64,000 bases of DNA from Bacillus subtilis subsp. subtilis str. 168 (GTDB lineage Bacteria; Bacillota; Bacilli; Bacillales; Bacillaceae). Shown piece by piece: positions 17,402 through 18,560 of the stretch. The stretch covers positions 1,054,001-1,118,000 of the forward strand of contig NC_000964.3 of assembly GCF_000009045.1 (NCBI RefSeq), read 5' to 3'. The stretch's first letter is position 1, and each line of letters starts with the position of its first letter. The position numbers and the translations under genes are program-made. Under the pieces are notes generated by a model. It saw only the letters and a list, made by a program, of their open reading frames with translations, did no database searches and was not told the origin of the DNA.

Positions 17402-17488
17402 ATGAGCGGAGGATACTCTAACGGATTCGCGTTGCTCGTAGTACTGTTCATTTTGCTTATCATCGTAGGTGCAGCTTACATCTACTAA
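17402..17488 (+). CDS. sscA: 28-aa YjcZ-family spore micropeptide MSGGYSNGFALLVVLFILLIIVGAAYIY
   Basis: AAAGGAGG RBS; FALLVVLFILLII hallmark; below the ORF-track size cut-off. Confidence 0.88.
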   Translation: MSGGYSNGFALLVVLFILLIIVGAAYIY

Positions 17489-17612: not shown

Positions 17613-17699
17613 ATGGGTGAAGTATTTGCAGGCGGATTCGCTTTATTGGTTGTGTTATTTATTTTATTGATTATCATCGGCGCTTCTTGGCTGTACTAA
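17613..17699 (+). CDS. sscB: 28-aa YjcZ-family spore micropeptide MGEVFAGGFALLVVLFILLIIIGASWLY
   Basis: AGGAGGTG RBS; paralog of the preceding peptide. Confidence 0.85.
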   Translation: MGEVFAGGFALLVVLFILLIIIGASWLY

Positions 17700-17705
17700 T
17701 CAACA

Positions 17706-17746
17706 TAAAAAAGCATAGCTGCTTAATCAGCAGCTATGCTTTCTTT
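17706..17746. terminator. Bidirectional terminator downstream of sscB and of the ATC-start ORF
   Basis: AAGCATAGCTGCT-TAATC-AGCAGCTATGCTT with A6 left and T-rich right flank. Confidence 0.85.
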
Positions 17747-17751
17747 CGTAT

Positions 17752-17937
17752 TTACACTGTAAAGGAGATCTCCACAAACGAAGAGATCAGTAAAATTAAT
17801 ATAGATACATTAATAAATCGGAATACCTTATCTTGCCGCTCTTCAGGAATCTCTCTGACAAGGCATAATGTATTGGTGAGCCTGTTTATGAAATATAAAA
17901 TAAACACGGCAGCCACGATAAAATAGAATAAAATGAT
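17752..17937 (-). CDS. Putative 61-aa two-TM membrane protein with non-canonical (ATC) start, or start-lost pseudogene
   Basis: GAGAGAGGGGG RBS 8 nt before ATC; IILFYFIVAAVFILYFINRLTNTLCLVREIPEERQDKVFRFINVSILILLISSFVEISFTV-stop; terminator follows. Confidence 0.55.
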   Translation of the reverse strand: MILFYFIVAAVFILYFINRLTNTLCLVREIPEERQDKVFRFINVSILILLISSFVEISFTV

Positions 17938-18041
17938 GGGAGATTCCCCCTCTCTCTGAACTGTCCCATATTACATTACCAAATATTTATTAAAAAAGAT
18001 AGAATGCAAATTGAAAAATCGCCACCAGCACCAGGGTTTGA

Positions 18042-18560
18042 CTACTTTTCAACAAGAATATCCAAGCCGTCAGCTTCCTGATCAATAAAAGCGGTTTTCG
18101 GTGCTTTTATCAGCTTGAGAGCCAGCAGGAAATCAGGCAGACAGTAGCCGGCGTGAATGCCCGAGATCATGCAAAAATAATGAGCGTGATTCGGAAATGC
18201 CAGTGCTGCGTAAAACAATACCGGTGTAATCAGCAAGAACGGGCTGACGAGTGAAATCAGCATTGTTGTTTTTGGTATACGTTTCCATGTGCGCATGCGC
18301 AATATGTAAAACTTTTTTTCTATTTTTCTTTTTTTGCAGATGATTGGCAGGACATGGATGACTTTATGTACAAATAAAATAACGACGAGCAAACCGCCGA
18401 ATAAAGATACATATTCATCGCTTAAGCTTGTGCCAGGCCGCAGCAGCTCAAAAGCTAAAAAGGTAGATATAAAAACCAAAATCATAAAACATACAGCAGT
18501 TAATATTATGCGAACGGCGCCATAATCCTTCATGAGATTTATGGTCTTCCAGCAATTCAT
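18042..18560 (-). CDS. yhaJ: DUF3267-like membrane protein (zincin-like motif degenerate)
   Basis: GGAAGGA RBS before MNCWKTINL; 172 aa, several TMs, HKVIH. Confidence 0.75.

Follow-up and report, generated by a model that had tools for sequence, protein, structure and literature searches.

[quoted passage not shown] The AUA start of ccpN is conserved in Bacillus subtilis (PMC13009471), the AUU of infC is the classic near-cognate start codon (PMC1805508), and starts of the AUU type are sensitive to initiation factor IF3 and to C1402 methylation (PMC13659658). In Enterococcus faecalis, the rare ATT start of ebpA attenuates expression (PMC4447247).

Here, we describe a gene of B. subtilis 168 that, judged from its sequence, matches this class of weak near-cognate starts paired with an extended SD, as exemplified by infC, ccpN and cvfC1. 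It is located in the window (i.e., the whole stretch of 64,000 nt that was analysed), which is part of a genome of one single contig of 4,215,606 bp. At this locus, a near-cognate codon is found at functional spacing from a strong SD, with no canonical start able to substitute for it; the non-canonical codon is conserved in relatives (49 of the 49 genomes of the genus); and coding constraint starts at the proposed start and is absent before it. The reading we favour, and hold with good confidence as a whole, is that of a functional gene for a small membrane protein, which would be translated from a weak near-cognate AUH start (H = A, C or U) behind a long SD, its canonical start having been lost once. 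Initiation at the ATH codon, the weakness of that initiation and the status of the weakness as a selected trait are what we infer from the comparisons below.

Layout, product and transcription of the gene

The gene and its surroundings comprise the following features, in window coordinates.

17752–17937, minus strand: coding sequence, 61 codons and the TAA stop (17754–17752), for a protein predicted to form a helical hairpin in the membrane
17935–17937, minus strand: ATC, the likeliest initiation codon, 8 nt past the G run and homologous in position to the ATG, GTG or TTG found elsewhere
17932–17934, minus strand: ATT, the alternative initiation codon, 11 nt past the G run, giving a 60-aa product and used by most public calls
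17914–17916, minus strand: GTG, the first canonical start in frame (a 54-aa ORF in the ORF listing), not a conserved start
17971–17973, minus strand: in-frame TAA that closes the frame upstream
17707–17745, minus strand: bidirectional intrinsic terminator, a 17-pair stem with a T run, common to the gene and the convergent yhzF
17613–17699, plus strand: yhzF, convergent, 28 aa, a micropeptide of the YhzE/YjcZ family
17402–17488, plus strand: sscA, a micropeptide of the YhzE/YjcZ family
17967–18002, minus strand: conserved upstream block, consisting of CTATCTTTTT, about 10 nt and then TTTGGTAATGTAATATG

An earlier reading of this DNA from its letters alone (hereafter, the sequence-only reading) had described an ORF of 61 codons, opened by ATC behind a strong ribosome-binding site and specifying two hydrophobic helices, a description borne out by the sequence and by an AlphaFold2 model. 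The terminator it had proposed, with a T-tract in the minus-strand direction, is real: it extends from 17745 to 17707 with 17 pairs and a T run, and the 17-pair stem is present in the minimum-energy fold of that segment. The gene is probably monocistronic. We take the reference annotation to place a gene named yhaK between yhzF and yhaJ; our literature search returned no paper on the ORF, on B. subtilis “yhaK” or on BSU09960.

The AlphaFold2 model (based on an alignment of 37 sequences; mean pLDDT 91.9) consists of two helices, 2–27 and 32–60, joined by a turn at R-E-I-P. The product is thus modelled as a small integral membrane protein folded into a two-helix hairpin, the conserved polar connector of which is probably cytoplasmic. 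In this connector, N18, T21, L24, C25, P31, E32, V38, R40, I42 and N43 are invariant, while in the second helix, S52-S53 is invariant and E56 nearly so. Pfam searches returned no family above its curated threshold (the best match, ATP-synt_J, with an E-value of 0.24, is under its cut-off), and there was no match for the product in NCBIfam nor for the locus in Rfam. In the ESM Atlas, the product matches clusters of “hypothetical protein” only, and a Foldseek search of the PDB with the predicted hairpin yielded nothing useful (best E-value, 3.8).

The upstream block is conserved in Bacillus, Metabacillus, Neobacillus, Cytobacillus and Aeribacillus, and is unique in its own genome. A role as promoter or operator of the gene is probable; the block contains TGgTAATGT, which is like an extended −10 element. 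When it was compared by eye with the consensus sequences for sigma A, B, D, E, F, G, H, K, L and W, none was recognised confidently, and a pattern search of the genome for a regulon led to a single additional match, located within a transporter gene and, in our view, due to chance. Between the stop codon of yhaJ (18042) and the gene (window positions 17975–18042, minus strand), B. subtilis has no recognisable intrinsic terminator. A clear hairpin followed by a T run is present between yhaJ and the gene in species of the pumilus type (loci L014–L019). Read-through from yhaJ may differ between species.

When Fozo et al. (2010) probed the 3′ end of yhzE-2, the opposite strand was seen to give rise to a strong RNA, 110–120 nt in length, throughout growth (PMC2887945). 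yhzE-2 is identical with yhzF (17613–17699, plus strand), and the RNA is thus located on the strand of the ORF, at its terminator (approximately 17700–17820 of the window). This RNA, which may be either a 3′ fragment of the mRNA of the gene or a separate small RNA, constitutes indirect evidence of transcription on the ORF’s strand at the terminator.

Conservation and selection

Homologous ORFs, which the sequence-only reading had proposed to look for, were found by a six-frame search in 40 out of 41 relatives; in the family, a relative of the ORF occurs in all 91 genomes, and scanning one genome per species led to 431 confirmed loci. In an even sample of the class, the ORF is present in 46 of 301 genomes, limited to the window’s own order and one further family. 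It is essentially a single-copy gene, with a weak second partial match (E-value 4.4e-4) in 1 of those 301 genomes. Synteny extends across genera as scoC-yhaI-(yhaJ)-gene-(yhzF/sscA)-prsA, where yhaJ is usually present, and where one or two genes for YhzE-type micropeptides, on the opposite strand, separate the gene from prsA. Our survey thereby flags a conserved protein family beside prsA in hundreds of species.

The start codon and dN/dS were compared across Bacillus, as had also been suggested: codon 1 is an ATH in 49 of 49 genomes, and dN/dS ranges from 0.04 to 0.12 between the window and B. velezensis, B. atrophaeus, B. pumilus, B. altitudinis, B. paralicheniformis and B. glycinifermentans, with dS values of 1.0–1.6 with respect to the species of the pumilus and licheniformis groups. 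Amongst 38 distinct Bacillus sequences, the number of variable columns (out of 61) is 25 at the first, 10 at the second and 51 at the third codon position, and all 49 frames within the genus are intact, each of them exactly 61 codons long. An ORF of 79 aa on the plus strand (17687–17926), antisense to the gene and having third codon positions in common with it, was also considered and dismissed as a shadow ORF, in view of its higher dN/dS and the extra stops present in some relatives.

Could the ORF be an untranslated relic in Bacillus, in a region kept for a function at the RNA or DNA level, e.g., for an RNA that acts on the yhzF mRNA? The absence of a canonical start agrees with this explanation, and so do the strong RNA of ~110–120 nt on the ORF’s strand, antisense to the 3′ end of yhzE-2 (= yhzF) (PMC2887945), and the constraint at the nucleotide level evident from the frozen synonymous sites described below. 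However, with dS above 1 since the loss of the start, a relic would be expected to have dN close to dS, frameshifts and stops, whereas the observed dN/dS is 0.04–0.12 and the 49 frames are intact; moreover, the constraint spans the whole ORF and not its 3′ part alone. We consider a relic highly improbable. Rather, the conservation, the purifying selection and the genus-wide ATH codon together argue for a real, widely conserved gene under purifying selection that has a non-canonical start, which was one of the two alternatives entertained in the sequence-only reading.

The initiation codon and its history

The ribosome-binding site that precedes codon 1 is the following element.

17946–17955, minus strand: extended SD AGAGAGGGGG, pairing to the 3′ end of the 16S rRNA over 10 positions, including two G-U pairs

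The spacer between AGAGAGGGGG and the ATC is AATCTCCC (8 nt), in which the AUC at 17944–17942 adds three pairs to the SD duplex, beyond an internal loop. The duplex with the 16S 3′ end of the same genome has an energy of −16.2 kcal/mol, a value that just 3% of 2814 long ORFs in this genome attain, even if each is represented by its best-pairing site. A site of this kind, together with 50 or more open codons downstream and the lack of a canonical start upstream, is a feature of just 18 ATH codons in the entire genome, several of which simply have a genuine ATG or TTG as the next codon. Other such ATH codons of this genome are found at 1334966 (plus strand), 2025678 (minus), 1506602 (minus), 25163 (minus) and 3712590 (plus); all five are candidate non-canonical starts, and the ATC at 1334966 opens 1332 codons.

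Within the genus Bacillus, codon 1 is ATC, ATT or ATA in each of the 49 species genomes and ATG in none, as counted by a pattern search, for which the single non-matching genome was read separately. In all genera examined outside Bacillus, including those of other families, the gene has an ATG, or sometimes a GTG or TTG, 7 nt past the corresponding G run (e.g., GGGGGATCTCAT-ATG). Amongst these genera are Metabacillus, Cytobacillus, Neobacillus, Peribacillus, Rossellomorea, Aeribacillus, Thermolongibacillus and Nanhaiella, as well as four further genera of the same family. A MAFFT nucleotide alignment lines up the ATH codon 1 with the canonical starts of the sister genera, column for column.

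The sequence-only reading was right that ATG, GTG and TTG are absent near the ribosome-binding site: the nearest canonical codon in frame is the GTG at 17916–17914, 29 nt from the G run. If translation started there, the protein would have 54 aa, and the upstream SD and ATC would be irrelevant. This GTG is the only ATG, GTG or TTG in frame near the 5′ end, and it is the start chosen in some public calls (P0005, on 41 contigs), but it is without an SD of its own, and helix 1 would shrink to approximately 10 hydrophobic residues. In other Bacillus species, moreover, the codon is replaced by ATC, GTC, GCC, CTG, GTA or GTT, although a few of them have TTG. The seven codons 5′ of the GTG behave as coding sequence does, with changes in none of the seven at position 2, in all seven at position 3 and in three at position 1, these three being conservative. 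We regard a start at the GTG as very unlikely.

In-frame stops are present 5–12 codons upstream of codon 1 (5–8 in other Bacillus species), and no start-like codon occurs between these stops and codon 1, where the intervening codons constitute the ribosome-binding site itself. The region upstream of codon 1 is not conserved as protein. The constraint on codons 1–7, the lack of conservation of the GTG and the upstream stops together imply that initiation would have to use the ATH codon. As an initiator, AUC is generally held to be poor.

The same gene might instead be initiated one codon downstream, at the ATT (17934–17932), to give a product of 60 aa. AUU is the classic near-cognate start of infC (PMC1805508), public calls of the identical 60-aa product from the ATT (P0045) exist on at least 1000 contigs, and in an ungapped protein alignment, Met1 of the other genera stands opposite codon 2. 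Nevertheless, the choices of gene callers are not evidence, the ATT is 11 nt away from the G run, whereas codon 1 and the ATG of the other genera have a spacing of 7–8 nt, and the nucleotide alignment equates codon 1, not codon 2, with the canonical starts. In species of the pumilus type, furthermore, codon 2 is GTT and cannot be a common start; codon 1 is the sole start-like codon left there and, therefore, the only candidate common to the genus. An ATT start for this gene appears somewhat unlikely to us. From these sequence comparisons, the initiation codon is most likely the ATC at 17937, and the ATT at 17934 is possibly usable as a second initiation site.

The claim that the gene was unannotated does not hold for the public databases, given the 60-aa product from the ATT on at least 1000 contigs. 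The calls expose how inconsistently one gene has been delimited, at 54, 60, 61 and 72 aa: the 61-aa form from the ATC is found on 6 contigs, 61-aa forms from ATA are called in the pumilus group, and the named entries amongst the calls are “hypothetical protein” only. One locus of the pumilus type, with ATA GTT and 85% identity to the query, is on a 1511-bp contig filed under Neobacillus drentensis (L050), which looks like contamination of that assembly by the B. pumilus group.

Longer calls of 71–72 aa in genomes of the velezensis and licheniformis types (P0001, P0004, P0011, P0044) start at an ATG within the upstream block (17969–17967), which is out of frame in strain 168 and in frame in some species. 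A single-base difference puts this ATG in frame (L008–L011, L013, L020–L023), and the first 10–11 residues of the 71–72-aa calls are the translated ribosome-binding site. The calls very likely have wrong N-termini. One could envisage that translation does begin at this ATG, for a longer protein that in 168 would involve a frameshift into the frame of the ORF. The ATG is conserved in the upstream block, the velezensis- and licheniformis-type species have it in frame with their 71–72-aa calls (P0001, P0011), and AGGGGG with the CUC-containing spacer resembles the shift-promoting context of prfB. Its relation to the frame nevertheless varies with the species, from in frame to +1 or to a stop after 2–4 codons (in the pumilus type), and it is out of frame in the Metabacillus loci that we checked by eye; in addition, no SD precedes it, and the 10–11 upstream codons are not conserved as protein. 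Such a start is hardly credible, and the ATG belongs to the upstream block, not to the gene.

As regards the history of the ATH codon, parsimony on a tree of 3-kb loci rooted on Metabacillus requires, at the third base, that G was replaced once at the root of the genus and that five more substitutions followed, all of them between A, C and T. A single change at the base of the genus makes the loss of the start old. On this evidence, the ancestor of Bacillus lost the canonical start in a single event, and its descendants have retained a start that is presumably weak. The other alternative in the sequence-only reading, a recent ATG-to-ATC loss in this lineage, finds no support, as the loss is common to 49 of 49 genomes of the genus, traces to one basal event and was followed by purifying selection. 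The pattern is suggestive of selection against a strong start, the five changes among A, C and T being too few to prove that G is avoided.

The median energy of the SD duplex is −16.9 kcal/mol in ATH species as compared to −15.8 kcal/mol for all genera with a canonical start. We also considered the strong SD as compensation for the weak codon and rejected this idea, as the sister genera with ATG have an SD of the same strength. On this view, Bacillus would have turned down an otherwise strongly initiating gene. The locus thus offers a natural experiment on start choice, where the same gene with the same strong ribosome-binding site has AUG, GUG or UUG in the sister genera versus AUC, AUU or AUA in Bacillus.

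Possible masking of the ribosome-binding site and comparison with known systems

Three further elements may bear on access to the ribosome-binding site.

17935–17952, minus strand: local hairpin, predicted to pair the G run to CUCCC in the spacer and to the UC in codon 1
17842–17868, minus strand: codons 24–32, with frozen synonymous sites, containing GAGAUUCCU
17853–17845, minus strand: GAGAUUCCU, a 9-nt complement (codons 29–31) to GGGAAUCUC at 17948–17940, i.e., to the ribosome-binding site and spacer

The local hairpin has an energy of −7.0 kcal/mol, which is not unusual (45 of 200 shuffles fold as well), and its pairs form with a probability of 0.53–0.72 in longer transcripts. The frozen stretch stands out at the synonymous sites: in Bacillus, all 10 invariant third positions of the ORF are located in codons 24–37, with 7 out of 8 invariant in codons 25–32, a clustering for which the window-corrected P is ~1e-4. 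No other part of the ORF pairs as well with the SD region as the stretch with GAGAUUCCU: over 100 distinct sequences, the mean energy is −11.8 kcal/mol, and 81% are at −8 kcal/mol or lower. The putative long-range helix has −13 to −18 kcal/mol across the family and is weak in genera in which spacer and codons differ. The RNAalifold consensus contains this helix and no other; 97.3% of the cells pair and one compensatory change is present; covariation is nearly absent (34–43 of 500 shuffles reach the observed value), because both sides of the helix hardly vary. When single sequences are folded, its probability is 0.0003, and it lies 3–4.5 kcal/mol above the optimum. On the plus strand, the 27 nt of the frozen stretch look like a promoter-sized TTCAGG-16 nt-CATAAT, and they alternatively fit an element at the DNA level.

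The mechanism we propose for the favoured start at codon 1 is as follows. The 30S subunit would be held by the unusually long SD duplex, formed by AGAGAGGGGG and the AUC at 17944–17942, which would set the P site on the near-cognate AUC at 17937, where the initiator tRNA would have a third-base mismatch; the AUU at 17934 may serve too. Initiation would be inefficient and should be sensitive to IF3, so that the protein is made at a low level. The small hairpin, and perhaps also the 9-bp helix with codons 29–31, would mask the ribosome-binding site and lower the output further. The non-AUG start probably keeps the output low.

A more elaborate version, in which the near-cognate start, the hairpin at the ribosome-binding site and the 9-bp helix with its frozen synonymous sites form the layers of one selected translation throttle, is speculative and, in our opinion, unlikely. 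Through the 9-bp helix, initiation could become dependent on ongoing translation or a helix-opening factor. If the throttle were true, the protein would be harmful or regulatory above trace amounts and its output would respond to the IF3 level or the growth state; the gene would then be a chromosomal, core-genome counterpart of the masked mRNAs for small membrane toxins. The gene also bears on the reasons for which a cell would attenuate a membrane micro-protein instead of losing it, and it provides a test case, in the best-studied Gram-positive model, for the yield of near-cognate starts and for their tuning by IF3 or 16S methylation.

With the type I toxin mRNAs of txpA/RatA and bsrG/SR4 (PMC6562991, PMC2887945), the gene shares a small hydrophobic membrane protein as product (61 aa, two hydrophobic helices) and a masked ribosome-binding site, which is predicted here. 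Like them, it is convergent with its neighbour, the 3′ ends overlap, and an RNA has been detected there on the ORF’s strand. The sole antisense overlap seen is that of the 3′ ends with the convergent yhzF, via the common terminator, and the RNA of Fozo et al. is on the strand of the ORF itself. Unlike the type I toxins, which have one helix, the product has two; and where such toxin loci are patchy and prophage-linked, or multicopy, this gene is essentially single copy and occupies a fixed syntenic position in the core genome of hundreds of species, including all 91 genomes of the family. The YhzE/YjcZ micropeptides, sscA and yhzF, are likewise small and hydrophobic, and they are its neighbours in nearly all genomes; however, they consist of 28 aa with a single helix, are specified by the opposite strand from canonical starts and have no sequence similarity to the product.

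The gene resembles ebpA in the rare ATT/ATH start and, by analogy, in an expression that would be kept low; ebpA, in contrast, encodes a large pilus protein and has an annotated ATG downstream (PMC4447247). The closest resemblance is to infC (AUU/AUA), ccpN (AUA) and cvfC1 (AUU), which likewise have an isoleucine-type codon at the proper distance from an unusually long SD, with the non-canonical codon kept among relatives; by analogy with them, attenuated initiation would be expected here, and cvfC1 even specifies a product of the same 61 aa. It differs from these three in that its third base drifts between C, U and A within one genus, while the sister genera all still have the ancestral AUG (or a GUG or UUG), and in that its initiation at this codon is a prediction from sequence. 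Furthermore, infC, ccpN and cvfC1 encode regulators or a translation factor, whereas the product of the gene described here would be a membrane hairpin.
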